A stretch of 64,000 nucleotides of DNA, from NCBI GenBank assembly GCA_002269645.1, contig NIVC01003280.1, positions 1 through 64,000 on the forward strand. The letters run 5' to 3'. Below the pieces are notes generated by a model. The model made no database searches. It was not told where the DNA came from and saw only the letters and a program-made list of their open reading frames with translations. Positions 28,701-64,000 of the stretch are shown one piece after another (position 1 is the stretch's first letter; each line of letters opens with the position of its first letter). A program made the translations under genes and the position numbers. Origin of the DNA: Macrostomum lignano. Taxonomy: Eukaryota.

Positions 28701-30953
28701 TACAGCTGCTCAGAGCCAGCTGCTCAAATGCACTCTCCCACAGCCTCCCTGTACAACTGCTCAGAGCCAGCTGCTCAAATGCACTCTCCCACAGCCTCCC
28801 TGTACAACCGCTCAGAGCCAGCTGCTCAAATGCACTCTCCCACAGCCTCTCTGTACAGCTGCTCAGAGCCAGCTGCTCAAATGCACTCTCCCACAGCCTC
28901 CCTGTACAACTGCTCAGAGCCAGCTGCTCAAATGCACTCTCCCACAGCCTCCCTGTACAACTACAGCGTGCAGACGGCTCAGTCAGCTGACAGCCTTCAG
29001 AGCACCGAGTTCTCAGACACTGCCAGCGGCCTTATTATCGGCTCCTTCGAGCTGGAGCACTGCCTGACTCCGTCAGACTCGCTGCTCATCGTTCTGGGCG
29101 AAGCCTCCGACTCGATGGGCGCCTCTGAGCACAGATGTCGGAGGCTGACCATCTGCAACCAGATGGCCGACGGGAAGCGGCGACGACTGCGGCTTCAACT
29201 GAGCCTCCATCCGACCAGATCCTACACGATGAAGGTCTTCAAGCTGGCCAGCGGGTCCAGGCTGTGCGAGCAGCCCCGAGTTCGATTCTTCTTCACCAGG
29301 TCGGCGGGCGACGACCGGCCGCTGGTGCAGCTGGCGGCGCGACGCTGCGGCGCCTGCGGTGACGATGGCAGCGACTTCCGCTGCAACATGACGGCCTACC
29401 TGCGGAGCGGCTGGGTTGGCGGGCTGCTGCTAAAGCTGACCGGAGTTTTAGGCGATCAAAGTGACTGGATCAAATTTCCGGCCAATCAGAGTCAGCGGGT
29501 GTCGGTGAGCTCACGGAGACCGTTTTGGGCGAGCAAACGGCGGGAGTAATGATTTAGTACGACTCACGTAGAATACTATAGCATTAAAATACTGTATTTT
29601 TTGCTTAAGGCAGCCTTCCAGTTTCGCAAAACTGCCGGATCGAGACGGACGATTTCCAGTGCAAGGCGAAGCATCTTTTCATTAGGATTCAATGGTAATC
29701 CACTCTGTGATTGACCTCATTGACACTGTGATTGACATCACCGACACTTTGATTGACCTCACCGACACTGTGATTGACTTCACCGACACTCTGATTGACC
29801 TCACCGACACTCTGTGATTGACCTCACCGACACTCTGATTGACCTCACCGACACTCTGTGATTGACCTCACCGACACTCTGTGATTGACCTCACCGACCC
29901 TTTGATTGACCTTAACGACACTGTGATTGGCCTCACCGACACTCTGTGATTGACCTCACCGACACTCTGATTGACCTCACCGACACTCTGATTGACCTCA
30001 CCGACACTCTGATTGACCTCACCGACACTCTGATTGACCTTAACGGTGATTGACCTCACCGACACTCTGTGATTGATCTCAATGACACTCCAAATTCCTC
30101 TGACTAATTATTTACAGACAAGTCGCTCCGCTCGCCGACCCTCTGTCAGCCCTCTGAGCCGCTGGCAGTCTGCCCGAGGCCGCTGTTGCCGCCGACAGTG
30201 GGCCAGTGGAGCGCGCCTTCGCCCTCCCAGTCGGCCAGAGGGTCTGTCAATCGATCAACAATCAGCGACACAGCGCCCGCAGTTTTAAGCTGGGCGCTTC
30301 CTCCGGCGCTAGTCCTGGCGCTCTTCCTGGCGCTCTACCGGGCGCTCTATGCTCAGCGCAATTGCGGCGCCTGCGGCGATAGCAACACGAGAAAACTTGT
30401 CCTGCTAGTGCTTCCAGAAGCCGGAAATCCAACGACCCGTCAGCTTATTCGCCGGCTGCCAGCGGCCCCGGCCGGAGTCGAGATACGTCAGGTGGTCGGC
30501 CTGAGCAAGCTCAACCGACAGCTAATTGGCAGCTCGTGCCTCGTCATCTTCCTGAGCTGGGACTCAAAGTTCGACAGCTTCCAAGCTGGCAGCCTGTCGG
30601 ATGCAGCCAGGCGGAGTCTGAGAACGGCGCTGCTGACTGAGAAGCACCGGATGCTGGGAGCCTTCATCAACTCGGGAGCCGGACCGCCTGCTGACTCGAT
30701 CTGGTCCGGCCTCGATGCCAGGATGCTGAGACTGGACGATGAAGCGGCTTGGAGAGATCTGCTGCTGGAGTTATTTGAGCAAAAGACTGAAAAAAACAGA
30801 GCGAAAACACATATCAGCCACGTGTTGCATCGCAAGTTTTCCATTCTGAAGCAACTACAATCTCTTTCTTGCACCCACATGCCACTGTCCCGGAAAAGAT
30901 CGACAGTTATGGCGTGTTCTGCGCGTTATTTTGCATCACGTGCTCTAACTTAA
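22797..30953 (+). CDS. Type I membrane receptor-like protein with TIR/SEFIR-like tail (IL-17-receptor-like architecture), copy A; exons 22797-22916, ~28974-29504, 29622-29694, 30118-30953
   Basis: Signal-peptide-like exon (MPLVLRVVMPLLLCALC, donor TTG|GTGAGA); Cys-containing ectodomain exon; phase 0/0/1 junctions consistent; TM LSWALPPALVLALFLALY; tail RKLVLLVLP...GVEIRQV...RQLIGSSCLVIFLS resembles the SEFIR betaA-alphaA-betaB-betaC pattern. Linkage of exon 1 and the domain identity are inferred. Confidence 0.6.
23080..23530. repeat. Low-complexity 8/16-bp repeat CTCACTCCGTCACTGC
   Basis: Source of three overlapping repeat ORFs. Confidence 0.9.
24375..25940. repeat. Minisatellite, 34-35 bp unit GGAGACAGACAATGGTAGATTGTGTCTATGGTTTT
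   Basis: About 45 copies. Confidence 0.97.
26610..27450. repeat. Minisatellite, 16-bp unit GAAATATCACA(A/G)ACCT
   Basis: About 50 copies. Confidence 0.97.
28140..28965. repeat. 42-bp minisatellite (CTGCTCAGAGCCAGCTGCTCAAATGCACTCTCCCACAGCCTC-type) abutting the ectodomain exon; duplicated at ~31396-32221
   Basis: About 19 copies, open in frame with the following exon. Confidence 0.95.
29705..30090. repeat. Intronic 19-21 bp minisatellite GATTGACCTCACCGACACTCT; duplicated at ~33285-33670
   Basis: Fills the intron between exons 3 and 4 of the receptor. Confidence 0.92.
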
Positions 30954-32229
30954 AAGAAAGGTAAAAGTAAATTATGCTGCAGATTTTATGCTGCTGATTA
31001 AACAACAGATCAAACTCCGGTGTAAACTGCAGTTGACTCTTTAAGCACAGCACAGATTTCATCGATTAGATCTGCTCCTACACAAACCTCAGCAGCGAAC
31101 GGAAATGAATTCACGACAGATGCCCTAACCCCCAACCTTGCTCTCCTTCAGACCCAGCACGGGCTTGGCACAGTGTCCAGGCACGCGGAAATGTGCAGCG
31201 AAATGCCTGGTAAGCCAGCGCGATTTCAATAACATGATTTTTTGTATTGAGGGTCAAATTTGTTAAAGGGAAAGTGGCTGGGGTAGCCAGCAGCAGCACT
31301 TCAATGCGTTAATCCAGGTTTTAAGCATCGGATTATGCCTGACTTTATCGATAAGCTCGATCTAAAAGTAATCTAGGCAAGGGTCAGCACTCTCCACAGC
31401 TTCACTGTATAACTGCTCAGAGCCAGCTGCTCAAATGCACAGCTCGAATGCACAGCTCAAAGGCACAGCTCAAAAGCACTCTCTCACAGCCTCCCTGTAC
31501 AACTGCTCAGAGCCTGCTGCTCAAATGCACTCTCCCACAGCCTCCCTGTACAACTGCTCAGAGCCAGCTGCTCAAATGCACTCTCCCACAGCCTCCCTGT
31601 ACAACTGCTCAGAGCCAGCTGCTCAAATGCACTCTCCCACAGCCTCTCTGTACAACTGCTCAGAGCCAGCTGCTCAAATGCACTCTCCCACAGCCTCCCT
31701 GTACAACCGCTCAGAGCCAGCTGCTCAAATGCACTCTCCCACAGCCTCTCTGTACAGCTGCTCAGAGCCAGCTGCTCAAATGCACTCTCCCACAGCCTCC
31801 CTGTACAACTGCTCAGAGCCAGCTGCTCAAATGCACTCTCCCACAGCCTCTCTGTACAACTGCTCAGAGCCAGCTGCTCAAATGCACTCTCCCACAGCCT
31901 CCCTGTACAACCGCTCAGAGCCAGCTGCTCAAATGCACTCTCCCACAGCCTCTCTGTACAGCTGCTCAGAGCCAGCTGCTCAAATGCACTCTCCCACAGC
32001 CTCCCTGTACAACTGCTCAGAGCCAGCTGCTCAAATGCACTCTCCCACAGCCTCCCTGTACAACCGCTCAGAGCCAGCTGCTCAAATGCACTCTCCCACA
32101 GCCTCTCTGTACAGCTGCTCAGAGCCAGCTGCTCAAATGCACTCTCCCACAGCCTCCCTGTACAACTGCTCAGAGCCAGCTGCTCAAATGCACTCTCCCA
32201 CAGCCTCCCTGTACAACTACAGCGTGCAG

Positions 32230-34359
32230 ACGGCTCAGTCAGCTGACAGCCTTCAGAGCACCGAGTTCTCAGACACTGCCAGCGGCCTTATTATCGGCTC
32301 CTTCGAGCTGGAGCACTGCCTGACTCCGTCAGACTCGCTGCTCATCGTTCTGGGCGAAGCCTCCGACTCGATGGGCGCCTCTGAGCACAGATGTCGGAGG
32401 CTGACCATCTGCAACCAGATGGCCGACGGGAAGCGGCGACGACTGCGGCTTCAACTGAGCCTCCATCCGACCAGATCCTACACGATGAAGGTCTTCAAGC
32501 TGGCCAGCGGGTCCAGGCTGTGCGAGCAGCCCCGAGTTCGATTCTTCTTCACCAGGTCGGCGGGCGACGACCGGCCGCTGGTGCAGCTGGCGGCGCGACG
32601 CTGCGGCGCCTGCGGTGACGATGGCAGCGACTTCCGCTGCAACATGACGGCCTACCTGCGGAGCGGCTGGGTTGGCGGGCTGCTGCTAAAGCTGACCGGA
32701 GTTTTAGGCGATCAAAGTGACTGGATCAAATTTCCGGCCAATCAGAGTCAGCGGGTGTCGGTGAGCTCACGGAGACCGTTTTGGGCGAGCAAACGGCGGG
32801 AGTAATGATTTAGTACGACTCACGTAGAATACTATAGCATTAAAATACTGTATTTTTTGCTTAAGGCAGCCTTCAAAGATTCTAAGAAACGAAATATTCT
32901 AGCCTTCTAAGATTTTCTAAGACACTATATGTTGCAGTCTTGAAAATTTTTATAAGAAAATAAATGTTGCAGTCTTGAAATATTTTCTAAGAAACGAAAT
33001 GTTTTGACTCAAATGCAAATTTAAATTTAAACTAACTTCTTAAATTGCTGCAGAATTCAAACAGTTGGATTAAGGCAAACCTCTCCATGCAGATCCGAAG
33101 CTGGCAGCTCACCTATCATGTGAGTAATGTTTTTAATAATTTGTAACACAGCTGAGCATATTTCGTAGAACTCAGAGCCTTCCAATTTAATTTCAATCCA
33201 GTTTCGCAAAACTGCCGGATCGAGACGGACGATTTCCAGTGCAAGGCGAAGCATCTTTTCATTAGGATTCAATGGTAATCCACTCTGTGATTGACCTCAT
33301 TGACACTGTGATTGACATCACCGACACTTTGATTGACCTCACCGACACTGTGATTGACTTCACCGACACTCTGATTGACCTCACCGACACTCTGTGATTG
33401 ACCTCACCGACACTCTGATTGACCTCACCGACACTCTGTGATTGACCTCACCGACACTCTGTGATTGACCTCACCGACCCTTTGATTGACCTTAACGACA
33501 CTGTGATTGGCCTCACCGACACTCTGTGATTGACCTCACCGACACTCTGATTGACCTCACCGACACTCTGATTGACCTCACCGACACTCTGATTGACCTC
33601 ACCGACACTCTGATTGACCTTAACGGTGATTGACCTCACCGACACTCTGTGATTGATCTCAATGACACTCCAAATTCCTCTGACTAATTATTTACAGACA
33701 AGTCGCTCCGCTCGCCGACCCTCTGTCAGCCCTCTGAGCCGCTGGCAGTCTGCCCGAGGCCGCTGTTGCCGCCGACAGTGGGCCAGTGGAGCGCGCCTTC
33801 GCCCTCCCAGTCGGCCAGAGGGTCTGTCAATCGATCAACAATCAGCGACACAGCGCCCGCAGTTTTAAGCTGGGCGCTTCCTCCGGCGCTAGTCCTGGCG
33901 CTCTTCCTGGCGCTCTACCGGGCGCTCTATGCTCAGCGCAATTGCGGCGCCTGCGGCGATAGCAACACGAGAAAACTTGTCCTGCTAGTGCTTCCAGAAG
34001 CCGGAAATCCAACGACCCGTCAGCTTATTCGCCGGCTGCCAGCGGCCCCGGCCGGAGTCGAGATACGTCAGGTGGTCGGCCTGAGCAAGCTCAACCGACA
34101 GCTAATTGGCAGCTCGTGCCTCGTCATCTTCCTGAGCTGGGACTCAAAGTTCGACAGCTTCCAAGCTGGCAGCCTGTCGGATGCAGCCAGGCGGAGTCTG
34201 AGAACGGCGCTGCTGACTGAGAAGCACCGGATGCTGGGAGCCTTCATCAACTCGGGAGCCGGACCGCCTGCTGACTCGATCTGGTCCGGCCTCGATGCCA
34301 GGATGCTGAGACTGGACGATGAAGCGGCTTGGAGAGATCTGCTGCTCCAGGCTGCTTGA
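32230..34359 (+). CDS. Receptor copy B: duplicated exons ~32230-32760, 33202-33274, 33698-34359 with the original short C-terminus ...AAWRDLLLQAA*
   Basis: Exon sequences match copy A; intact acceptors and donors; no signal-peptide exon of its own within the duplicated unit. Confidence 0.6.
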
Positions 34360-37452: not shown

Positions 37453-38414
37453 GGAGGGACTCCCGCCACCGCCAGAGGCATCGTTATCGCTGTCATGACT
37501 TCCTCTTCTTTTCCCGGCAATTTAGAAGATTCAGATTGTTCTTCCATTTCATTTTGAGTAATTATATTTCCAATAACTTTGCTTGGCACTTTAAAACTAG
37601 TATAGCATTGCTATTTTGGTCTCAGGCCACTTTAATGTACATGTTAATTTAAATTAGGGCAGACAGCTAAAGAAGGGCCAGGGCCAGTCTTCCCCAGGCC
37701 ACTGATATCGATCGTTTTGGGATGGAGTAGAGGGGACCATTTTTTGCTTGGTCATTTTTTACAAAAAACAGCCCCAGGCAAAGCACTGCTGGATGCGCAG
37801 TTTAGTTATACTTATTGTTCTGTGGCTGGCGCTGCCCTGCAACATCATTCCGAGAAGAACATTTCTTGGAAATAAACCCAAATACACTAAAAAAATTTTT
37901 TTCACTGCGCCATAGCAGCGTAGACTGAACCACGGACGGAGACAGTAAATGATTGTACATTTGCATGTACACACCGGACAGAAATGTATACGTACATCGA
38001 ACCATTCATTTCTAGTTTACTCGCCAATTAGAGTTTATAATTATAGCCGACAATTGGTTGAGGTCAGCATAAAATAACATACATATATTCGAATATTAGA
38101 AACCAAAATTTAATTATTACGAGCCTATCTATACTGATAAGCAATCCTCATTTTTCAGTAAGTTCCAGTTAACAAATTAAATCGAAAAGATTTTGCTCTT
38201 CGAAATGAGGCGAACGCGAAAGCAAGCCAAGAGAAAATCTGCCAATTCTTCTGGCAAGACTTCGTCTCAATCTCCATCATCGCTGCAGCTAGTGAGTTCC
38301 ATTGTATATGATATCCACTTGTACGATTTCCAGAAATTTTCCGAAAAATTACATGTACACTGTAATATGGGTCACTTTTCCACCCTTTGACACTCTTAAT
38401 CATCATTTGCCACC

Positions 38415-40460
38415 TTTTCCCACCCTCTCTCCCACTCTTTACTCACCCTCTCTCCCACTCTTTACTCACCCTCTCTCCCACTCTTTTCCCACACTCTCTC
38501 CCACTCTTTTCCCACCCTCTCTCCCACTCTTTTCCCACCCTCTCTCCCACTCTTTTCCCACCCTCTCTCCCACTCTTTTCCCACCCTCTGTCCCACTCTT
38601 TTCCCACCCTCTCTCCCACTCTTTTCCCACCCTCTCTCCCACTCTTTTCCCACCCTCTCTCCCACTCTTTTCCCACCCTCTCTCCCACTCTTTTCCCACC
38701 CTCTCTCCCACTCTTTTCCCACCCTCTCTCCCACTCTTTTCCCACCCTCTCTCCCACTCTTTACTCACCCTCTCTCCCACTCTTTTCCCACCCTCTCTCC
38801 CACTCTTTTCCCACCCTCTCTCCCACTCTTTTCCCACCCTCTCTCCCACTCTTTTCCCACCTCTCTCCCACTCTTTTCCCACCCTCTCTCCCACTCTTTA
38901 CTCACCCTCTCTCCCACTCTTTTCCCACCCTCTCTCCCACTCTTTTCCCACCCTCTCTCCCACTCTTTACTCACCCTCTCTCCCACTCTTTTCCCACCCT
39001 CTCTCCCACTCTTTTCCCACCCTCTCTCCCACTCTTTTCCCACCCTCTCTCCCACTCTTTTCCCACCCTCTCTCCCACTCTTTACTCACCCTCTCTCCCA
39101 CTCTTTTCCCACCCTCTCTCCCACTCTTTTCCCACCCTCTCTCCCACTCTTTTCCCACCCTCTCTCCCACTCTTTACTCACCCTCTCTCCCACTCTTTTC
39201 CCACCCTCTCTCCCACTCTTTTCCCACCCTCTCTCCCACTCTTTTCCCACCCTCTCTCCCACTCTTTTCCCACCCTCTCTCCCACTCTTTTCCCACCCTC
39301 TCTCCCACTCTTTACTCACCCTCTCTCCCACTCTTTACTCACCCTCTCTCCCACTCTTTACTCACCCTCTCTCCCACTCTTTTCCCACCCTCTCTCCCAC
39401 TCTTTTCCCACCCTCTCTCCCACTCTTTTCCCACCCTCTCTCCCACTCTTTTCCCACCCTCTCTCCCACTCTTTTCCCACCCTCTCTCCCACTCTTTTCC
39501 CACCCTCTCTCCCACTCTTTTCCCACCCTCTCTCCCACTCTTTTCCCACCCTCTCTCCCACTCTTTACTCACCCTCTCTCCCACTCTTTTCCCACCCTCT
39601 CTCCCACTCTTTTCCCACACTCTCTCCCACTCTTTTCCCACCCTCTCTCCCACTCTTTTCCCACCCTCTCTCCCACTCTTTTCCCACCCTCTCTCCCACT
39701 CTTTACTCACCCTCTCTCCCACTCTTTTCCCACCCTCTCTCCCACTCTTTTCCCACCCTCTCTCCCACTCTTTACTCACCCTCTCTCCCACTCTTTTCCC
39801 ACCCTCTCTCCCACTCTTTTCCCACCCTCTCTCCCACTCTTTACTCACCCTCTCTCCCACTCTTTTCCCACCCTCTCTCCCACTCTTTTCCCACCCTCTC
39901 TCCCACTCTTTTCCCACCCTCTCTCCACTCTTTTCCCACCCTCTCTCCCACTCTTTTCCCACCCTCTCTCCCACTCTTTTCCCACCCTCTCTCCCACTCT
40001 TTACTCACCCTCTCTCCAACTCTTTACTCACCCTCTCTCCCACTCTTTTCCCACCCTCTCTCCCACTCTTTTCCCACCCTCTCTCCCACTCTTTTCCCAC
40101 CCTCTCTCCCACTCTTTTCCCACCCTCTCTCCCACTCTTTTCCCACCCTCTCTCCCACTCTTTTCCCACCCTCTCTCCCACTCTTTTCCCACCCTCTCTC
40201 CCACTCTTTTCCCACCCTCTCTCCCACTCTTTACCCACCCTCTCTCCCACTCTTTTCCCACCCTCTCTCCCACTCTTTTCCCACCCTCTCCCACTCTTCT
40301 TACCGTCTCTCCCACTATTTTCCCACCTTCTAAAACTCTTTTCGCACCCTCTCTCCCACTCTTTTCCCACCCTCTCCCACTCTTCTTACCGTCTCTCCCA
40401 CTATTTTCCCACCTTTTTAAACTCTTTTCGCACCCTCTCTCCCACTCTTTTTCCCACTCT
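38415..40460. repeat. 2-kb polypyrimidine minisatellite, 23-bp unit CCACCCTCTCTCCCACTCTTTTC
   Basis: About 85 copies; source of the 792-aa and 648-aa ORFs and many KEWERG ORFs. Confidence 0.97.
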
Positions 40461-40574
40461 TTCCGTTCCTCTAAGTAATTCAAGACTTGCCATTTTTTTA
40501 AGAGTGGAGCATTTATTTCAGTCTTATTTCTTTTACTACAGGCGGAGACCACCGCTGCGCCACCTTCGAGCGAC

Positions 40575-45365
<4,791 letters not shown>

Positions 45366-45519
45366 ATGCCCTTAATGATGAGAGCGGAACAGAAAATACT
45401 GATCAAGGAGGCGAACGGAGTTGAAAAGTAAATTACAAAGAATAAAAATATCTGAGGAGACACGGACTTGAGACTGAGAGAGGAAAGACGACAGCGACAG
45501 AAGACGCGTATGCAGACAA

Positions 45520-46905
45520 GGATGAGTGAGGCAGAAGCGGACACAAAGCGAGTGGACACAAACGGGCAAAGAGTGAGGCAGAAGCGGACACAAGCGGTCA
45601 AGGAGTGAGGCAGAAGCGGACACAAACGGGCAAGGAGTGAGGCAGAAGCGGACACAAACGGTCAAGGAGTGAGGCACAAGCGGACACAAACGGGCAAGGA
45701 AGAGTGAGGCAGAAGCGGACACAAACGGGCAAGGACGAGTGAGGCAGAAGCGGACACAAACGGTCAAGGAGTGAGGCAGAAGCGGACACAAACGGGCAAG
45801 GAAGAGTGAGGCAGAAGCGGACACAAGCGGTCAAGGAGTGAGGCAGAAGCGGACACAAACGGGCAAGGAGTGAGGCAGAAGCGGACACAAACGGTCAAGG
45901 AGTGAGGCACAAGCGGACACAAACGGGCAAGGAGTGAGGCACAAGCGGACACAAACGGGCAAGGAGTGAGGCAGAAGCGGACACAAACGGTCAAGGAGTG
46001 AGGCAGAAGCGGACACAAACGGGCAAGGAGTGAGGCACAAGCGGACACAAACGGGCAAGGAGTGAGGCACAAGCGGACACAAACGGGCAAGGAGTGAGGC
46101 AGAAGCGGACACAAACGGTCAAGGAGTGAGGCACAAGCGGACACAAACGGGCAAGGAAGAGTGAGGCAGAAGCGGACACAAACGGGCAAGGACGAGTGAG
46201 GCAGAAGCGGACACAAACGGTCAAGGAGTGAGGCAGAATCGGACACAAACGGGCAAGGAAGAGTGAGGCAGAAGCGGACACAAACGGGCAAGGAGTGAGG
46301 CACAAGCGGACACAAACGGGCAAGGAGTGAGGCACAAGCGGACACAAACGGGCAAGGAGTGAGGCAGAAGCGGACACAAACGGTCAAGGAGTGAGGCACA
46401 AGCGGACACAAACGGGCAAGGAAGAGTGAGGCAGAAGCGGACACAAACGGTCAAGGAGTGAGGCACAAGCGGACACAAACGGGCAAGGAAGAGTGAGGCA
46501 GAAGCGGACACAAACGGGCAAGGAAAAGTGAGGCAGAAGCGGACACAAACGGGCAAGGAAGAGTGAGGCAGAAGCGGACACAAACGGGCAAGGAAGAGTG
46601 AGGCAGAAGCGGACACAAACGGTCAAGGAGTGAGGCAGAAGCGGACACAAACGGTCAAGGAGTGAGGCAGAAGCGGACACAAACGGTCAAGGAGTGAGGC
46701 AGAAGCGGACACAAACGGTCAAGGAGTGAGGCAGAAGCGGACACAAACGGTCAAGGAGTGAGGCAGAAGCGGACACAAACGGTCAAGGAGTGAGGCAGAA
46801 GCGGACACAAACGGTCAAGGAGTGAGGCAGAAGCGGACACAAACGGTCAAGGAGTGAGGCAGAAGCGGACACAAACGGTCAAGGAGTGAGGCAGAAGCGG
46901 ACACA
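45520..46905. repeat. Minisatellite, 32/35-bp unit GAGTGAGGCAGAAGCGGACACAAACGGTCAAG
   Basis: About 42 copies just downstream of the CCCH-gene stop. Confidence 0.96.
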
Positions 46906-47354
46906 ACACATCGAAATTTTCAAAGAAATCGACACTCAAATCGGCAAAAATTCCGCCACGGAGCAGCGGAGCATGGCAAAAAAATAACAAAGAACACTTG
47001 CTCTCCTACCGAAAATATTTTAATTGTATTGTTTTATATCAAACCAAATATATATTATACACTTAACGAATGCTGTGATGTAAAAAAACAAAATACTTTT
47101 ATATTTTTTATTTAAAGTTAAAAAGAACGTTACGGCGACAGTTCTCTATTTATGACAGTATAAATGAGTCAAATGACAGCTAGTGTGAGTGACAGCTATA
47201 ATGTCCGTGTATTGATAGCATCGCTAAAATAACGTGCAAGCCCATAAAGGTGTAAGACGTAATCATCATTCATACGTTAGCTTTTAGTTATGTTTAATAG
47301 CTGTCTACGACAGGCGATTGAATAAGGAGAAAAGACTGAGAAACATGAGGGAGA

Positions 47355-48150
47355 GGCTCTGAGACATGACGGGAGACTCTGAGACATGACGGGAGACTCT
47401 GAGACATGACGGGAGACTCTGAGACATGACGGGAGACTCTGAGACATGACGGGAAACTCTGAGACATGACGGGAGACTCTGAGACATGACGAGAAACTCT
47501 GAGACATGACGGGAGACTCTGAGACATGACGGGAGACTCTAAGACATGACGGGAGACTCTGAGACATGACGGGAGACTCTGAGACATGACGGGAGACTCT
47601 AAGACATGACGGGAGACTCTGAGACATGACGGGAGACTCTAAGACATGACGGGAGACTCTGAGACATGACGTGAGACTCTGAGACATGACGGGAGACTCT
47701 GAGACATGACGGGAGACTCTGAGACATGACGGGAGACTCTGAGACATGACGTGAGACTCTGAGACATGACGGGAAACTCTGAGACATGACGGGAAACTCT
47801 GAGACATGACAGGAGACTCTGAGACATGACGGGAGACTCTGAGACATGACGGGAGATTCTGAGACATGACGGGAAACTCTGAGACATGACGGGAGACTCT
47901 GAGACATGAGGAAGAGACGCTGAGACATGAGGAAGAGACGCTGAGACATGAGAAAGAGACTCTGAGGCATGAGGAAGAGACGCTGAGACATGAGAAAGAG
48001 ACTCTGAGACATGAGAAAGAGACTCTGAGACATGAGGAAGAGATTCTGAGACATGAGGAAGAGACGCTGAGACATAAGAAAGAGATTCTGAGACATGAGG
48101 AAGAGACGCTGAGACATGAGAAAGAGACTCTGAGACATGAGAAAGAGATT
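47355..48150. repeat. Minisatellite, 20-bp GAGACATGACGGGAGACTCT grading into 21-bp GAGACATGAGGAAGAGACGCT
   Basis: About 39 copies. Confidence 0.96.
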
Positions 48151-48639
48151 CTGAGAAATGAGGGAGATTTTGAGACAATACCGAGAGAGGAGCAACACAA
48201 TAAACAACAAATATAGGTTTTCAATTAAATATTTCACAAAGGCAAGCGACTATTCGTAATGTATAAGACTGTTTGAAAAAACACATAAATAAATACAAGT
48301 CCCGTATCAACAAACAAACAAAGCAAAGTTGAACAAAAATTAAGAGATTGTTTACGAAGAGATCTTCAATAAGATAGCCAGAGAATCAAGATGATATGAA
48401 CTCTTAGTTATCTGCTATACTTGAGATGGCTGCAACAACGTAAATACAAATTTCATGTCACTGCAAACAAAGTACAAACGGAAAATGGTTTCTTTTAAGG
48501 TGTAAATTTTGCTCTTTTCTTTGGAAATCCGATTGGGAAACCATCCTATCTCATCACTTACGCGATTTACCTTCGACTCAAAACCCTAGGTCACATATTC
48601 AAGATTTAAGATTCACAACTAACTACCCAATCTTTCACA

Positions 48640-48935: not shown

Positions 48936-49308
48936 CTTCTAATATACGATTCACAACCAACTATCCAATCATTCATAACTCGATAATCACTTATTCACAG
49001 AGTAGCATACGATTCACACAACAACCTACCTATCTCCAATTCGCAACAAAAACACAACAAAAAATCCACACAACAAAAAACAGTTATAATGATATGATAG
49101 AAATTGATGAGAGCTATAGGATCAATATAAAAACTTTTGTTCGCAGAATACCTTACGAGTTGAGTAAAACGATTAATAAAATTTGTTGCCTAATAATAAT
49201 ATGTTATAATTTGAGACAATATCAGAGCAGACGAGGAATGAAGCGGCAATATGCCCGCTGAACTGTATAATATGTAGACAGTTAAAGAAGTTGTTACGCT
49301 TCGACCCG

Positions 49309-52300
49309 TCAGTGGCTCCCGTTAGCGAGCTTCTCAACGCAATCCACGGCGGCAAGAACCCAAGCCATGGGGCGGTCCCGCTTTGCCAGCAGTTCGTTGA
49401 GCTGCGTTGGAAGGCAATGTGTTGGATACTGTATGCCATTCTCTATCCTCTGAATCAGTGACTAGATCTTTAACATTAATTGACTAGATCAGCATGAGCG
49501 ATGACTAGATAAGCATGAGCAATGACTAGATCAGCATGAGCAGCATTAGCAATGACTAGATCAGCATGAGCAGCATTAGCAATGACTAGATCAGCATGAG
49601 CAATGACTAGATAAGCATGATCAATGACTAGATCAGCATGAGAAATGACTAGATCAGCATGAGAAATGACTAGATCAGCATGAGAAATGACTAGATCAGC
49701 ATGAGAAATGACTAGATCAGCATGATCAATTACTAGATCAGCATGAGCAATGACCAGATAAGTGTGAGCAGCATGAGCAATGACTAGATAAGCATGAGCA
49801 ATGACTAGATCAGCATGAACAATGACTAGATCAGCATGAGCAATGACTAGATCAGCATGATCAATGACTAGATCAGCATGAGCAATGACCAGATCAGCAA
49901 GAGAAATGAGCAGATCAGCATGAGCAATGACCAGATCAGCATGATTAATGACTAGATCAGCATGAGCAATGACTAGATCAGCATGAGCAATGACCAGATC
50001 AGCATGAGCAATGACCAGATCAGCATGAGCAATGACCAGATCAGCATGAGCAATGACCAGATCAGCATGAGCAATGACCAGATCAGCATGAGCAATGACC
50101 AGATCAGCATGAGCAATGACCAGATCAGCATGAGCAATGACCAGATCAGCATGAGCAATGACCAGATCAGCATGCCAGTCTTACCTGACCAGACCGGACC
50201 ACGACTCCGTGAGCGGCGGTCAGCTTGGCCTTAGTGGCGGCGATGCCATCCGGCATGACACCGCAGCAGGCGTCCTCAAGCAGCGCGGTGCGGTAGCCCA
50301 GCTCCTGGGCGTGGGCAGCCGTGGATCCGACGCAGACATCTGTGGCCAGGCCGCAGACGATGAGGTCAGAAATTCCCAGTTTGCTCAGTCTGTCGTGCAG
50401 GTCCGTCTTCTTCAGCTTGTTGTTGTCCCAGAATGCCGAGTAGCTGTCTATATCCGGGTCCGTGCCCTTGTACACCTTGGTGTGGTTGCCAGCCAGCTGC
50501 AGGAGGGACGAGACGGACAAAACTGTTCCAGGTGGACACAATCAGTTCCAAACAGACACAGTCAGTTCCAAACAGACACAATCAGTTCCAAACAGACACA
50601 GTCAGTTCCAACACAGACACAGTCAGTTCCAACACAGACACAGTCAGTTCCAACACAGACACAGTCAGTTCCAAACAGACACAGTCAGTTCTAAACAGAC
50701 ACAGTCAGTTCCAAACAGACACAGTCAGTTCCAAACAGACACAGTCAGTTCCAAACAGACACAGTCAGTTCCAACACAGACACAGTCAGTTCCAAACAGA
50801 CACAGTCAGTTCCAAACAGACACAGTCAGTTCCAAACAGACACAGTCAGTTCCAAACAGACACAGTCAGTTCCAAACAGACACAGTCAGTTCCAAACAGA
50901 CACAGTCAGTTCCAAACAGACACAGTCAGTTCCAAACAGACACAGTCAGTTCCAAACAGACACAGTCAGTTCCAAACAGACACAGTCAGTTCCAAACAGA
51001 CACACTTAGGTCTAAACAGACACATTTCCAAACAGACACAGTCAGTTCCAAACAGACACAGTCAGTTCCAAACAGACACAGTCAGTTTCAAACAGACACA
51101 CTTAGGTCTAAACAGACACATTTCCAAACAGACACAGTCAGTTCCAAACAGACACAGTCAGTTCCAAACAGACACAGTCAGTTCCAAACAGACACAGTCA
51201 GTTCCAAACAGACACAGTCAGTTCTAAACAGACACAGTCAGTTCCAAACAGACACAGTCAGTTCCAAACAGACACAGTCAGTTCCAAACAGACACAGTCA
51301 GTTCCAAACAGACACAGTCAGTTCCAAACAGACACAGTCAGTTCCAAACAGACACAGTCAGTTCCAAACAGACACAGTCAGTTCTAAACAGACACAGTCA
51401 GTTCCAAACAGACACAGTCAGTTCCAAACAGACACACTTAGGTCTAAACAGACACATTTCCAAACAGACACAGTCAGTTCCAAACAGACACAGTCAGATC
51501 CAAACAGACACAGTCAGATCCAAACAGACACACTTAGGTCTAAACAGACACACTTAGGTCTAAACAGACACATTTCCAAACAGACACAGTCAGTTCCAAA
51601 CAGACACAGTCAGTTCCAAACAGACACAGTCAGTTCCAAACAGACACAGTCAGTTCCAAACAGACACAGTCAGTTCCAAACAAACACAGTCAGTTCCAAA
51701 CAGACACAGTCAGTTACAAACAGACACAGTCAGTTCCAAACAGACACAGTCAGTTCCAAACAGACACAGTCAGTTCTAAACAGACACAGTCAGATCCAAA
51801 CAGACACAGTCAGTTCCAAACAGACACACTTAGGTCTAAACAGACACAGTTCCAAAGAGACACAGTTACAGATGGACACAATCAGTTCCAGACGAACATA
51901 ATCAGTTTCAGACGGACACAAACAGCTCCAGATGGACACAAACAGCTCCAGACGGACACAAACAGCTCCAGACGGACACAAAATATGAAATACACCAACC
52001 TTAAGCTCCGAGTGCAGTTCAGCGCCTGAAGAATTTTGCACGCAATGCCGAGGCCACATTATCTGCTCGATGGGTCCGTAGGCCTTCGTCTCCAGCACCA
52101 CAACATCGTTGAGGCCCACTTTGGCTGCGTCCTTGATCTGCAGAGTGGAGGCCGGCCTGGTTTGATGTAACTTTTAGATTAAAACTTTTTGATGCAAGAG
52201 AGGGACACTGAGACAAGATAAAGGCGGACACTGAGACAATATAGATAGGGATATTGAGACTAGATAGAGGGACACTGAGACAAGATAGAGACGGATACTG

Positions 52301-53398
52301 AGACAAGATAAAGGGACACTGAGACAAGATAGAGGGGGATACTGAGACAAGATAGAGAGGGACACTGAGACAAGATAGAGAGGGACACTGAGACAAGATA
52401 GATAGGGATATTGAGACAAGATAGATAGGGATATTGAGACAAGATAGATAGGGATACTGAGACAAGATAAAAATACACTGAGACAAGATAAAAATACACT
52501 GAGACAAGATAGTGACGGACACTGAGACAAGAAAGACATCTATCAGACTGATAAAAATCCCATTGTTGAGGCGCTCTCCCACCTTAGACTTGTCGCTTAG
52601 CTTCCGCTTAGCCAAGTTGTCCAAAAACGAGATGTGATCAGCTGGGTGCCAGTCGAGGGAATAGATGACTGTCTTGAAGGCGGCAGAGTGCTTGGCTATG
52701 ACGTCATTGATAACGGGTACAACGTTGGCACCATCCTCTTTGGCTGGATAGACTTTCAAAGCGAGGCTACCCGTGATGAAGTCGTTCTGCACGTCAACAA
52801 TCACCATGGCAACTGGGCCGGAGAAAATCACGCTCAGCCAGGGCAGAGCGCGAGCCGCCATGTCCGAGGGCGACACGAGGCCATCCTGGAGAAGAGGAGC
52901 ACTTTACTGCAGTCACCTGACCCCACCAATGGAATCAAAGGGTGTCACCTGACCCCACCAATGGAATCCCAGGGTGTCACCTGACCCCACCAATGGAATC
53001 CCAGGGTGTTACCTAACCCCACCAATGAAATCCCAAAGTGTATCATATGCTAAAAAAATTCTTAGCATTTCAAGACCATACCAACCTTGTCCTTGTCCAA
53101 GAAGGCATAGATTTTATCCAGCTCAGCTGTACTCAGTGAACCACTGGTTGCAATGGACTCAACCAAATTTTTTACCTCTGCTTTGTCTAATGCATTATCT
53201 CTAAAATAGATAAATTTTTTGAGACAATCAGAATAATTTATTTAAAACTGAAGTGCAAATTAAACATATATGTTAAACAAAAATCATAACTTACTTGTTT
53301 GCATCAAATGTCTGAAAGATCCTTTTTATATCAGCTTCTGTGATATCCTTGCCAGGATATTGGTTAAAAAACTTGCTATTGCCAAACATTTTGTGCAT
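49309..53398 (-). CDS. PNC1: Nicotinamidase (isochorismatase/cysteine hydrolase family; PNC1/Naam-like) with an N-terminal EF-hand; exons 53398-53295, 52885-52583, 52137-52000, 50496-50185, 49401-49309
   Basis: VIVDVQNDFITGSL, YSLDWHPADHISF, WPRHCVQNSSGAELH, KGTDPDIDSYSAF, VCGLATDVCV (catalytic Cys), ELGYRTALLEDAC; EF loop FDANK|DGLVSPSD (junction needs one extra G); last exon LNELLAKRDRP...* is not in the ORF track. Confidence 0.92.
49485..50172. repeat. Intronic 21-bp minisatellite CAGCATGAGCAATGAC(T/C)AGAT
   Basis: About 32 copies in nicotinamidase intron 49402-50184. Confidence 0.96.
50535..51980. repeat. Intronic 20-bp minisatellite GTCAGTTCCAAACAGACACA
   Basis: About 70 copies in intron 50497-51999. 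Confidence 0.96.
52195..52535. repeat. Intronic ~21-23 bp minisatellite GAGACAAGATAGAGGGACACT
   Basis: About 15 copies in intron 52138-52582. Confidence 0.92.
52912..53030. repeat. 32-bp repeat GTCACCTGACCCCACCAATGGAATCCCAGGGT, about 4 copies, intronic
   Basis: Direct inspection. Confidence 0.85.
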
Positions 53399-58216: not shown

Positions 58217-59694
58217 TTAAGTGTCTTATCTCTAAATTGAACTTTCGCCCCCTGATTTTTGCTTCTTACTTTGCCCTTTAGAGAACCTTTTTTATTTGCT
58301 CAGACTTTTCCTAATTTCTAATCCCTATATAAACTTTTAAAAATATTCGTAACTATATTAGACTACTGCATCGATCTTTTTTGCATTTGCAAAAAGAAAA
58401 ATTTGCTGAAAAGGCAATGCTGAGATCGATTCATTCATGCATCGAAGCATTTAGCAAAGTGAGATGTTATTCTGCTATTAGCTATACTACTGCTAGCATG
58501 TTATTCACTAGTATAGCGTCCTGACGTGTTAAGTCGTCCAATACAAACTTACAAAGAATAATAAGATTTAATTACATTTATATGATGGTCCAATATTGTT
58601 TTAAACTCATTTTTGCACGTGTGATGGCGTGTCAAAGGCAAAAATCCCAAAATTTGTCTACATGTAATGTAGCTCAGTTGACATGCAATGATCGAGGAAC
58701 CAAAAGCACGACTATACATGTATATTGAGTATATCTACTGTATGTACCATCTACTGTACATGTACGGGCGTGGTTGCATAAATTAATGAACCAGAAGTTC
58801 TCTGTTTGTCTGTCCGTGCATCTCAAGGCCCGTGCAACATTACCATCGATATAATTGCATTATATTGATACACGGAAACATATGTAGAGAAACGGTGTGA
58901 TACAATGTACGTGTACATGCAAGATGCACGGCTCCTCTTGAAGAGATCTCCAAGCTTAGCAGACTACTATAAAAGTAGTAAGATAAAAACATGAATAATC
59001 TATTTAAAAACTAACATGAGTCATACTCTAATTTCAGTAATGCCTGCAATATCACGTAAACAGCGAGTGATCATTACATAGTCCGAAAAACCGGCCGGTT
59101 TTCAACCGATATTTCCAAATATGGTAAATGTCAGTTTAAATGCGACCTAAGCTTCACCCCTTTTCTACGTAAAACCCCACCGGTCAATGGACAAAGTACA
59201 TTTCTTGATTGTTATCAATGAAACCGGTTTGGGGCTCAAGGTCGAATAAAAGTGTAAAAATACAAGCGAGAAATCCGAGCTGAAACCTCAGACTCAGAGC
59301 AGCCTTAAGAAATCTTGGGCTTAGCCAGAGCTACTAAGCAAGGCTATATCTCTGAGAGAGACAAACACAAATTGGTAAGCCTTTGTTAGAGTCTTTGTTA
59401 CTTGAGTCTTTGTTATTCGATTATTAAGAGCTGTGTCATTGCCGGCCGTTACTGATCAGTCGATTTATTAAGTTATTGAATTTGAGGCCGCCTATTCATA
59501 AGGGATTGGATAGGATCTGCGGACCGATTCCAATACTCTTAGTCGATTATTGATTGATTGATTTTGGTACCCTAGAGTAACCGATAGGAGCACACGACTC
59601 CGATTCCGTTATTTCTAGAAGAAGACCCCCTTTCGGAGGACTTCGTCATTGTTATAGAGTTGAATTTGTTATTAGGGCGCATCTCTGATCTCAG

Positions 59695-60577
59695 CACTCG
59701 AGGAAAATAATGGTTTCTGCACTCGAGGAATATATCGATTTCTGCACTCGAGCAATATATCGATTTCTGCACTCGAGGAATATATCGATTTCTGCACTCG
59801 AGCAATATATCGATTTCTGCACTCGAGGAAAATAATGGTTTCTGCACTCGAGGAAAATATCGATTTCTGCACTCGAGCAATATATCGATTTCTGCAATCG
59901 AGGAATATATCGATTTCTGCAATCGAGGAATATAATGGTTTCTGCACTCGAGCAATATATCGATTTCTGCAATCGAGGAATATATCGATTTCTGCAATCG
60001 AGCAATATATCGATTTCTGCACTCGAGGAATATATCGATTTCTGCACTCGAGCAATATATCGATTTCTGCAATCGAGCAATATATCGATTTCTGCACTCG
60101 AGGAATATATCGATTTCTGCACTCGAGCAATATATCGAGTTCTGCAATCGAGGAATATATCGATTTCTGCAATCGAGGAATATATCGATTTCTGCACTCG
60201 AGGAATATATCGATTTCTGCACTCGAGGAATATATCGATTTCTGCACTCGAGGAATATATCGATTTCTGCACTCGAGCAATATATCGAGTTCTGCAATCG
60301 AGGAATATATCGATTTCTGCAATCGAGCAATATATCGATTTCTGCACTCGAGCAATATATCGATTTCTGCAATCGAGGAATATATCGATTTCTGCAATCG
60401 AGGAATATATCGATTTCTGCAATCGAGGAATATATCGATTTCTGCAATCGAGGAATATATCGATTTCTGCACTCGAGCAATATATCGATTTCTTCACTCG
60501 AGGAATATATCGATTTCTGCATTCGAGCAATATATCGATTTCTGCAATCGAGGAATATAATGGTTTCTGCACTCGAG
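59695..60577. repeat. Minisatellite, 25-bp unit CTCGAGGAATATATCGATTTCTGCA
   Basis: About 35 copies; source of five repeat ORFs. Confidence 0.96.
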
Positions 60578-61777
60578 AAACATATTGTCGTCGACGGACT
60601 ATGTTACTAAGCTCTCTTATTCGGCCGATTTAGAATTCAAGAAGACTACTCCGGAGGAAGAAGATTCGAAGAGACGAGTTCGGAGAACCTGCCCGACAAA
60701 GAAGAGGAGCCCGCATCAGTAAGTGATTACTGAATTCTGTTACCAGGCTTAAGGTCTGGAAGTGGGAGTTTTCGAGTGACTGAATACTACTCTTAAACTC
60801 TTCACTCTTATCGTAGCAATGTCACATGTAGCTCGTATATAGACATTCGCGGTGTGCTACGCTATGCGCTACGCTACGCTATGCGCGTACGTGGTCTTAT
60901 AATTTTAGGCGGTGCAGCACTCGCAAGAGCGTCGAGCCAAGCAGTACATCCCCATTTGATTTTGATATACCTTTTACTATAGAGTAGGCTAGCGTACATG
61001 TGTAGCTAGGCTACATAAAATATGCACTAGGCTATACTATCACATGTCATGGACAACTAGTTGTCCATGTCACATGTACAGTGTGTACTTTTTGCCATAA
61101 AATTCAACTATTGTGATTGACCTGTACGAATGAATACTCGTACATGAATGTAAATCAATGTAAGAAATGAGAGTATATGTATACGAAATTAGCAATTGCA
61201 GTGTATTTGCTTTAAAATAAAAGAACATGAAGCACATGTACATTGAGTAAAGTATAAAATGTCACAGCGCTTAGTATAATGTTACAAGGACCACTAGCTA
61301 CCGGTAAAACACTACGACGACGATGGACATATCGCTTTCAAACTTTTTTCATGCATGTACATATAGTGTGAAAGTACATGCACGGAAAGTGTACATAAGG
61401 CTTGATGAATAAGGAAAAATGTATTACATTGATGCAGATTGGTTTGTATATTGTAGCGCATAAGTAGATTTTGCATTGTTTTAATTATCACAATAAATGT
61501 TTTACGTACTGAAATAAAAATTTCAAATAATACCAGTCATTGCAGACAACGAGGATAAATTTAATATATGTAAAATTATCGTTTAAAGTCTGCCAGTCAT
61601 AGATAAACCACATTAGCCAACAAAGGCATTTACACGTAGTAGTTGCTCGTTGAATATGTCATCGCTGTTGTTTTACTGCGAGCACGGAAGTTAAGAGAGT
61701 TTTTTACCATAAATTTATAGTTAAGTCTCATTTCCAACGAATTTAAACGTATAGTAACTCTTATAGCATAAAGGCTC

Positions 61778-64000
61778 TCACCGTGAAACATCCTCATTGA
61801 AAATCATATTAGCCAAATCGCTAGACAATATCTTTAGCGCTGCCTCGTCATCATCCAGCTTCTTGGCCTCGAAACCCGACCAGGCCAAGTTCGCTGGCAG
61901 ATCGTCAGTCTTCTCGTTGACGAAGATTCCTTGAAATCGATGCTTCTCAGTTAGCAAGAGGGTTGTCAAGCTGTGCCTGGATCCATCTGAGAGGGTGTCG
62001 ATCTGCAATAAGGGAAATAAAAACGATTACAGGTCTTTCTCGTTGTCCTTGTCTGTCATTTGCTATTGAAGTTTTCCATCCGACAGTACAAGGACCACTA
62101 GGAACACTTCGTTATATAAGGACGTTACACTCTCGATTCGTGTAAAAATAGTTGAAGGCCGATTTTCGTTCTCGTATACATTATTATAATATTAGAGGAG
62201 AAAGACTTTAAAGCATAAAGACCAAATTATGCGGGTTCTGTATATGATGTTCACTCTGATATATTTTCAGAAACGTCACAAAATTTTGCATTCACATAAA
62301 TGTGCGTAAGATTTTCAGCTACTTATTAATTTTACTTTCTAAACTTGAAGATTTGGATAGCTACCAGACGCCCAAAAATAGGGTGTCTCCATTGTACAGG
62401 ATTTTCTTGCATCTATACATCTAGTGGGAAACTAAACTAACTGGTTTACTTGGTAGTAGGGGACAAAAATCTGAACAATTTGGCGAAAAAATCAACATTC
62501 TACATGCAATCGATTCGGAGATACAGGCATTTAAACAATCGGCCTTCAACTGTTTTTGCACGATTTGCAAGTGTTTCAAGTCTAGTAGTCCTTGCGACGG
62601 TAACCATGAAGTACATGTAAGTTCCCTTTGAATTTGTTCTGAATCAGTTTCCCTGCTAGATAATTTGACATTATTTGAGTTTCCATGCCCGTACATGTAC
62701 ATCTGGGAAGAATCGATGCGAGAGAAAATTATAACACCCATGTACTTGCCCGAAAGCTATCAAAAGCCGAATCGGCGCTCATAAACACGACAAGATTCGA
62801 ACTTCCGACCAATTGTCGCGTCAGACTTTGCAGACCAACAACCTTTACCACCTCGACGCCAGCGGCAGCCGCTGTCAGCGCGTGCTGGAACCGCCGCACA
62901 GTTGTCCGGCTAATGGCGTTGACATTTTCCAGTTCGGGCAGCACTAGGAGAATGAGCTTCCGTGCATTTCTCAGCCGACGATGACAGTACACGATCAGCA
63001 TCAATACTGACACTGGCACTAGCAATACTGCGACAAACACCAGCAAAATTACGGTTGTAGCAAATGTTTCAACTCTGTCAGCATAATCAGTTTGGTCCAG
63101 GGACATCGGCTTAGCCGGACAAAGTTTGCAGCTATCGAATAGAGCCTCCTCAAGATGGCAAAGCTGCGGATGAAGCAGCTTCTCTGCCGAGCCGTCTGCG
63201 TTACGTTTGCAGGGGATTAGCGTTAATCCATTAGGTTGTATGAGTTGAAATATTGAATTCCTCCCACTAAAAGACTCACCTGACCCGCGGATTGCGAAAA
63301 ACATTCGCCTACTCGTACAGCATTTTCGACTGCTATTTGCAAACCTTGGACGAAACTGAAAATCAAAATTGGCAATGATTGGCATTCGAAAACCTACTCT
63401 AAAAGAACCATTTTTACGTGAAAGAAACGTGAGACAGGTACACACATCAATCCGAATGAGAAGGCCAGCGGCAGGTGATATTCGAACTACGACCGACTGT
63501 TTGACCCACAGATTGCGTCTCTGAAGCCAACATGAGTGCGATTGGATGTACAATCGGTTGGGTGGAATTGAAAAGCTTTTTTGAGCGAGATAATTTCCGA
63601 GTTAATACGCTCGTGCGAGCACTTACATAAAAAATATCTGAGACATTCTGGAGATACTGCACCAAATCAACGGTGCTACTATAAAAAGCTACCCGCACCA
63701 GGAGCCTTGATGGACTCACCATTTTGTCGCTGAACTCGTAGCTGTCAGCGCTCCAAACAGACGGTTCATTCAGAGTCAGGCGCAGCCCGCCAACCCAGCC
63801 GCTCCGCAGGTAGGCCGTCATGTTGCAGCGGAAGTCGCTGCCATCGTCACCGCAGGCGCCGCAGCGTCGCGCCGCCAGCTGCACCAGCGGCCGGTCGTCG
63901 CCCGCCGACCTGGTGAAGAAGAATCGAACTCGGGGCTGCTCGCACAGCCTGGACCCGCTGGCCAGCTTGAAGACCTTCATCGTGTAGGATCTGGTCGGAC
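61778..64000 (-). CDS. Diverged paralog of the TIR/SEFIR-like receptor, 5' part outside the window; exons >64000-63720, 63355-63280, 63195-62750, 62002-61778
   Basis: Same exon phases (0, 1) as copies A/B; FRPRF...SRRMFFAI exon matches FRKTA...ARRSIFSL; TM TVILLVFVAVLLVPVSVLMLIVY; tail RKLILLVLP...GVEVVKVVGLQSLTRQLVGSSNLVVFMS...LLTEKHRFQGIF aligns with copies A/B. Confidence 0.7.

Follow-up and report, generated by a model that had tools for sequence, protein, structure and literature searches.

The stretch analysed here, bases 1-64,000 of contig NIVC01003280.1 of the Macrostomum lignano assembly Mlig_3_7 (GCA_002269645.1), is called the window throughout and is 64,000 nucleotides (nt) long; the contig itself measures 107,339 bp and extends 43 kb past it. 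The window carries three copies of a gene for an apparent single-pass membrane protein, genes A and B on the plus strand and gene C on the minus strand, convergent with the other two and 31-34 kb away, and a segment of the ectodomain exon of gene C is identical to a segment of both A and B. Mlig_3_7 was assembled from PacBio reads with Canu 1.4 and then corrected with Pilon, using Illumina reads mapped with Bowtie2 and RNA-seq reads mapped with STAR, and its annotation was derived from a transcriptome assembly (PMC5730564). The genome of M. lignano comprises three subgenomes, with a divergence of about 1.1% in coding sequence and about 2.2% genome-wide, and chimeric, collapsed or expanded sequences have been reported in it (PMC10733133).

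The identical tract and the three genes

The tract was located by exact search and by BLAST at the following positions, A and B being compared with C:

63782-63999, minus strand: identical tract in the ectodomain exon of gene C, codons PTRSYT...GWVGGL
29210-29427, plus strand: the tract in gene copy A
32466-32683, plus strand: the tract in gene copy B

Gene C matches A and also B at 218 of 218 nucleotides, as the first-pass annotation of this DNA had stated. The reading frame is common to all three copies (PTRSYTMKVFKL...RSGWVGGL), and the identity includes the silent sites, with 72/72 third positions and 41/41 four-fold degenerate sites unchanged. Chance is excluded as the cause, the probability of such a match being 0.59^218, or about 1e-50, over all sites and (1/3)^41, or about 1e-20, over the four-fold sites. 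Selection on the protein cannot keep 41 of 41 four-fold sites identical. Selection at the nucleotide level and an embedded RNA were likewise rejected, the window being without any match in Rfam.

On its membrane-proximal (3') side the tract ends abruptly after GWVGGL in the middle of the exon, at 63782/63781 in gene C, equivalent to 29427/29428 in gene A. At the opposite end the last base of the window, 64000 (G), mismatches base 29209 (A) of gene A, and the exact match therefore cannot be extended past 218 bp within the window; the 5' side of the tract lies beyond the window, which puts its length at 218 bp or more. Outside the tract, gene C and the A/B unit have exact matches of 11 nt at most, the level that shuffled sequences also reach (mean maximum 11.05), so that the visible part of gene C holds one tract and not several. 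A mosaic of several older tracts was on this ground rejected for that part of the gene. The final ~20 nt of the tract are rich in G runs (GGCTGGGTTGGCGGGCTGC; window 63782-63810, minus strand), and it is tempting to speculate that a G run at the tract edge could stall replication or repair synthesis.

Directly after the tract the nucleotide identity falls from 100% to 35-61% per segment. The remainder of the exon after GGL shows 24% amino acid and 35% nucleotide identity between C and A, the small next exon 33% and the juxtamembrane and transmembrane (TM) region 38% amino acid identity between C and A/B, and the cytoplasmic domain 55-62% amino acid and 32-48% third-position identity. For 130 aligned codons of the cytoplasmic domain the Nei-Gojobori method (NG86) gave 0.39 nonsynonymous (dN) and 2.9 synonymous (dS) substitutions per site, with 14/42 four-fold sites identical, which indicates that the silent sites of this domain are saturated. 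The tract junction is in frame, with 21 codons left to a phase-0 donor in the exon of C and 26 in that of A, and this donor is followed in both genes by a homologous small exon and then the TM exon; the tract thus lies at homologous, collinear positions of A/B and C. The intron content differs, gene C having an extra intron that splits the cytoplasmic domain and is absent from A/B, and gene B an extra annotated exon within a 322-bp insertion. The strong divergence of the linker, TM and tail exons that had been noticed in the letters is borne out by these values.

The part of gene C that lies downstream of the tract is composed of the following elements:

63720-63781, minus strand: remainder of the ectodomain exon after the tract (RLTLNEPSVWSADSYEFSDKM), with the donor ATG/gtgagt after SDKM
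63280-63355, minus strand: predicted small exon of 76 nt (FRPRFANSSRKCCTSRRMFFAIRGS plus 1 nt; cag/.../gtgagt), matching exon Y of A/B
62738-63195, minus strand: predicted exon for the juxtamembrane region, the TM helix and the first half of the cytoplasmic domain, with the donor at 62738 or 62746
61778-62002, minus strand: predicted last exon, for the second half of the cytoplasmic domain, with the acceptor at 62002 or 61986 and the stop codon at 61778-61780

The exons of gene C in the window are intact, and the 76-nt exon restores the phase required by the TM exon. Two more contigs of Mlig_3_7 with the same gene order (L002 and L003) were recognised as subgenome copies through the nicotinamidase cluster. 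On L003 (NIVC01001003.1) a copy of gene C, designated C', occupies the same place next to the nicotinamidase gene, and the comparison of L003 1-1371 with window 63139-61778 gave 6/618 coding differences (5 nonsynonymous, 1 synonymous) and 17/753 intronic ones, in agreement with the published subgenome figures of 1.1% for coding sequence and 2.2% genome-wide (PMC10733133). The flanks of C group with C' (~1% coding divergence), and the syntenic position of C' in L003 means that gene C is not a recent insertion; it is an old, syntenic resident of its position. The sequence of L003 reaches as far as window-equivalent 63139, which leaves ~640 bp to the tract, and that of L002 as far as 59728. Four of the five nonsynonymous differences between C' and C fall in the juxtamembrane/TM region and no sign of purifying selection was seen, in numbers too small to test.

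Genes A and B form a tandem duplication with the following features:

27510-30766, plus strand: duplication unit A
30767-34346, plus strand: duplication unit B
32875-33196, plus strand: B-specific 322-bp segment, which holds an annotated exon at ~33057-33122
31191-34359, plus strand: annotated gene model of gene B (P0001)
29622-29694 (A) and 33202-33274 (B), plus strand: annotated small exon Y
33698-34359, plus strand: exon of gene B for the juxtamembrane region, the TM helix and the whole cytoplasmic domain; its equivalent in A starts at 30118
~22797-22916 (approximate), plus strand: candidate signal-peptide exon (MPLVLRVVMPLLLCALCSDC...), single-copy and upstream of the duplication

Over 3.26 kb there are 0 substitutions between A and B, which differ in the length of one G homopolymer and in one indel of 322 bp. 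It follows that the match of gene C to both copies, correct for each of them, is not a pair of independent observations. After the tract the exon of A encodes LLKLTGVLGDQSDWIKFPANQSQRVS. The junction of the units, 30766/30767, falls 9 nt before the position of the B stop codon, and the reading frame of A therefore continues into unit B. The duplication is either a very recent one or an expansion introduced by the assembly. Gene B is annotated in GenBank, and genes A and C are uncalled; an older UniRef model, P0002, joins the exon at ~22.8 kb (MPLVLRVVMPLLLCALCSDC) to A/B exons. Directly upstream of the ectodomain coding sequence there is a 51-bp minisatellite of ~16 copies (28131-28962 and 31387-32218), which is open in the frame of the ectodomain exon with a 17-amino-acid unit (PTASLYNCSEPAAQMHS) and is spliced out in both database models.

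The encoded protein and the neighbouring sequence

Judged from sequence, A/B and C apparently encode a single-pass membrane protein with a signal peptide, an ectodomain that seems to be all-beta and contains cysteines, a TM segment and an alpha/beta cytoplasmic domain of ~135 amino acids. In the A/B protein the part encoded by the ectodomain exon is followed by that of one or two small exons, by the TM helix and by the ~135-amino-acid cytoplasmic domain, a type I single-pass architecture by inspection. The hydrophobic N-terminal exon MPLVLRVVMPLLLCALCSDC in P0002 is, also by inspection, a plausible signal peptide, and hydrophobic stretches of 20-25 residues followed by basic residues occur in A/B and C, with a weak match to the TM segment of Pfam Glycophorin_A.

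The first-pass annotation had suggested a TIR/SEFIR receptor, and the profile and structure searches that it had proposed were carried out. No match to TIR (PF01582) or SEFIR (PF08357) was obtained with hmmscan against Pfam at E<=1 and E<=10 for A/B, C and P0002, in the NCBIfam search or in the sequence profile search of the PDB; the PDB matches of Protein A cover one short helix (query 108-142) and were judged spurious. Word-index searches of 5.8 billion proteins returned only the window's own model, as did an HMMER profile search that went exhaustively through 1.84 billion representatives, so that homologs of the same architecture in other animals were not found in either set, and tblastn in the 64-kb window detected only the family members A, B and C. 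The AlphaFold (AF2) model of the cytoplasmic domain shows a b-a-b-a-b-a-b-b-a pattern at low confidence (pLDDT 52, pTM 0.47). With this model Foldseek gave no match in the PDB at E<=1e-3; the weak neighbours (E 5e-3 to 3e-2, TM-score ~0.5) include TIR (8spo, 7cm6), CheY-like, CpaE, SIS and riboflavin synthase structures. The fold may at best be called flavodoxin-like, TIR being one of many equally weak matches of that kind. The single-sequence AF2 model of the ectodomain is all-beta with a pLDDT of 37 and unusable for a fold search.

With TIR/SEFIR (STIR) proteins the family has in common a compact beta-alpha domain of ~135 residues placed directly after the TM helix, and SPARTA and SARM1 TIR domains are among the weak Foldseek neighbours. 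It differs from them in having no sequence-profile match at the thresholds tried, and CheY-like, CpaE and SIS structures score equally. Membership of TIR/SEFIR, as a claim, was rejected after the Pfam, NCBIfam, PDB-sequence, exhaustive HMMER and Foldseek tests, and an immune-receptor function of A/B and C is unsupported. The suggested diversified innate-immune receptor cluster was not recovered, since the window holds three copies, of which A and B are a tandem duplicate with 0 substitutions, and a single shared segment.

Two further genes lie between these receptor-like genes. The first encodes a zf-CCCH protein (PAA52226.1, 610 amino acids; 38205-45365, plus strand), which was reconstructed exactly by constrained splice enumeration and forms a singleton cluster; the products called in the other two subgenome copies have 507 and 355 amino acids. 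Its exons are:

38205-38291, plus strand: exon 1
40542-41480, plus strand: exon 2, which holds a coding proline-rich repeat
43521-43772, plus strand: exon 3
44387-44555, plus strand: exon 4
44700-44883, plus strand: exon 5
45164-45365, plus strand: exon 6

Open reading frames (ORFs) resembling a Tc1/mariner-type transposase, recognised by eye only, are found inside an intron of this gene (41654-42636, plus strand) and are followed by a triplicated fragment at ~42500-42700. The second gene encodes a nicotinamidase (PAA52227.1, 273 amino acids; 49300-52876, minus strand), 100% identical to the M. lignano nicotinamidase in UniRef. Its introns consist almost wholly of minisatellite arrays. In the other two subgenomes the gene is annotated with a product of 345-346 amino acids and with N-terminal EF-hand exons that are absent from the model on NIVC01003280.1.

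Minisatellite arrays fill much of the non-coding sequence, and several of them yield long spurious ORFs on both strands. Long arrays (units ~21-75 bp) occupy 8449-12611, 38300-40500, 43850-44400, 45400-48200 and 59687-60585. Short inverted-repeat pairs, 1.3-3 kb apart, occur at 14906-15034/17984-18111 (129 bp, 92%) and 56789-56856/58149-58216 (68 bp, 97%) and could be the terminal repeats of small transposable elements.

Origin of the tract

The best explanation of silent-site identity within otherwise saturated paralogs is recent homology-directed copying between gene C and the A/B lineage, that is ectopic gene conversion, over a length of 218 bp or more; it is probably correct, and the earlier proposal of a recent conversion or recombination between inverted paralogs ~31-34 kb apart is in this respect upheld. 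The mechanism itself is what we infer from the pattern. A/B and C would be ancient paralogs of a lineage-restricted gene for a single-pass membrane protein, and homology-directed repair or copying between these non-allelic loci would have replaced 218 bp or more of the ectodomain exon in one paralog by the sequence of its partner. The copied tract would then have its 3' end at the edge at 63782/63781, in frame, at an approximately homologous position and 21-26 codons before the exon end. The tract region may have been a pre-existing island of higher similarity, which would have permitted strand invasion. Zero differences in 218 bp set a 95% upper bound of ~1.4% divergence (3/218), which makes the copying event comparable in age to the subgenome split, or more recent; the conversion would have taken place no earlier than about the time when the three M. 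lignano subgenomes diverged.

The direction of copying was considered from base composition. The G+C fraction of third codon positions (GC3) is 64/72 (0.89) in the tract, compared with 147/269 (0.55; p=2e-8) in the other exons of C and 241/348 (0.69; p=4e-4) in the other exons of A, and in both A and C the tract forms a local peak of GC content. On these values a transfer from A/B to C may be weakly favoured.

Several points weigh against gene conversion. The GC3 of the tract is significantly above that of both host genes, a value which does not fix the direction and allows a third donor. The mismatch at base 64000 fits an end of the tract and a longer tract with ~0.05-0.5% differences about equally, a judgement that turns on a single base at an arbitrary window edge. 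Gene conversion normally requires substantial flanking homology, and the visible flank is essentially unalignable at the nucleotide level and without homology for strand invasion. A one-off conversion is thus mechanistically awkward unless homology continues upstream past the window; either the homology does extend upstream or the event was a template switch. The sequence, moreover, comes from an early PacBio/Canu assembly corrected by Pilon with both DNA and RNA-seq reads, and from a neopolyploid genome with known chimeric and mis-expanded sequence.

Interlocus gene conversion is well known from human HBG1/HBG2 and CYP21A2/CYP21A1P and from arm-to-arm exchange in Y-chromosome palindromes. The tract resembles these cases in being a fully identical block, synonymous sites included, with a sharp edge, shared by cis paralogs that may be inverted and lie tens of kb apart. 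It departs from them in that the classical partners are >90-95% identical over kilobases, whereas here the flank is saturated (dS ~2.9, no match >11 nt) and one tract end lies within the window.

The tract could instead be the edge of a longer, recent inverted duplicate of the 5' part of A/B that became fused to the old 3' part of C. Such a fusion would be due to template switching during replication or to a rearrangement without homology, perhaps in the burst of events that also duplicated A/B, and gene C would be chimeric. We consider it unlikely, even though the tract reaches to within one base of the window end with its length unbounded upstream, and the locus bears the marks of very recent structural duplication (0 substitutions in 3.26 kb between A and B, with a novel junction at 30766/30767). 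A breakpoint would also explain the absent downstream homology more easily than heteroduplex resolution, and the combination of two direct copies and one inverted copy resembles what template switching is generally known to produce. The base at 64000 already mismatches, however, and a random breakpoint would rarely give an in-frame junction at an approximately homologous exon position with the C exons intact downstream. C' shows the 3' part of C to be old and in place, an observation which is also compatible with the fusion. Rearrangements by template switching or microhomology-mediated break-induced replication (MMBIR) include those of the duplication-triplication/inversion-duplication type (DUP-TRP/INV-DUP), and the present locus is similar to them in having one inverted copy in addition to two direct ones, all without divergence, where a tandem duplication has recently taken place. 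Unlike them, it has the inverted copy at a homologous, in-frame site of an old paralog 30 kb away, and neither junction microhomology nor a contiguous triplication is visible in the window.

An artefact of assembly or polishing, by which A/B sequence was written into gene C by the consensus step, by Pilon or by local mis-assembly, is less probable still. The route would be a misassignment to C of reads from the two-copy, expressed A/B genes. The use of Canu 1.4 on early PacBio reads, with Pilon polishing by Bowtie2-mapped Illumina and STAR-mapped RNA-seq reads (PMC5730564), could have provided the occasion, as could the three subgenomes with their chimeric, collapsed or expanded sequences (PMC10733133); gene B has a model in the transcriptome-derived annotation and gene C has none, and the tract is one to two short-read lengths long. 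Best-hit mappers, on the other hand, place A/B reads on C only if C matches equally well, so that polishing cannot make 218 identical bases out of a saturated background. In addition, a 218-bp repeat is too short for a false Canu overlap, the tract edge is in frame and the adjoining C-specific sequence is intact and spliceable, and an independent subgenome copy confirms the flanks of C up to window-equivalent 63139. A chimeric contig join at the repeat was rejected, 218 bp being less than the assembler overlap length and a join being unable to generate identity.

Far more doubtful is the idea that the tract is one case of regular cassette-like copying, perhaps programmed or under selection, by which a ligand-binding segment of the ectodomain spreads within a flatworm-specific receptor family with a cryptic TIR-like tail whose members are otherwise too diverged to recombine. 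Segment exchange is a familiar feature of immune multigene families such as KIR/LILR, MHC and Ly49, of snail FREPs and of chicken Ig pseudogene conversion. The present case is like these in that the exchanged piece encodes part of the ectodomain of a single-pass protein and the TM and tail exons keep separate histories. It is unlike them in lacking a recognisable Ig, LRR, FN3, TIR or SEFIR domain and in having three copies, of which two are identical, and the effect of the event is to make the sequences more uniform. The mosaic diversification that had been read into the locus finds no counterpart in a single tract that makes the copies more alike.

The least probable account invokes a third, GC-rich family member that converted both genes, or an island homogenised repeatedly under GC-biased gene conversion. 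It would suit the GC3 of 0.89, significantly above the values of 0.69 and 0.55 for the remaining parts of A and C, and the GC peak in both genes, and recurrent homogenisation would explain how recombination started between otherwise unalignable genes; but no further family member was detected in the window or among the annotated proteins, the annotation being sparse, and 72 codons are a small sample in which the amino acid composition (many G, A, R) also lifts the GC content.

Significance for the gene family

The tract is best read as an event of a known type, a gene-conversion-type exchange, in an orphan receptor-like gene, and no long-standing question is opened by it. Were the cassette-like copying true, it would represent a form of receptor editing in an invertebrate, akin in spirit to the diversification of FREPs or VLRs. 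In practice, caution is advisable at this locus, with paralog-aware read mapping and paralog-aware knock-out design.

The locus also draws attention to a lineage-restricted, unannotated family of receptor-like membrane proteins in an organism used as a regeneration model; of the three copies in the window, A and C are missing from the GenBank annotation. Should the tract be confirmed on single molecules, it would mean copying between paralogs with flanks far too diverged for ordinary homologous recombination, and it would then bear on the persistence of small islands of concerted evolution or else on repair by template switching in a fast-rearranging post-polyploid genome.

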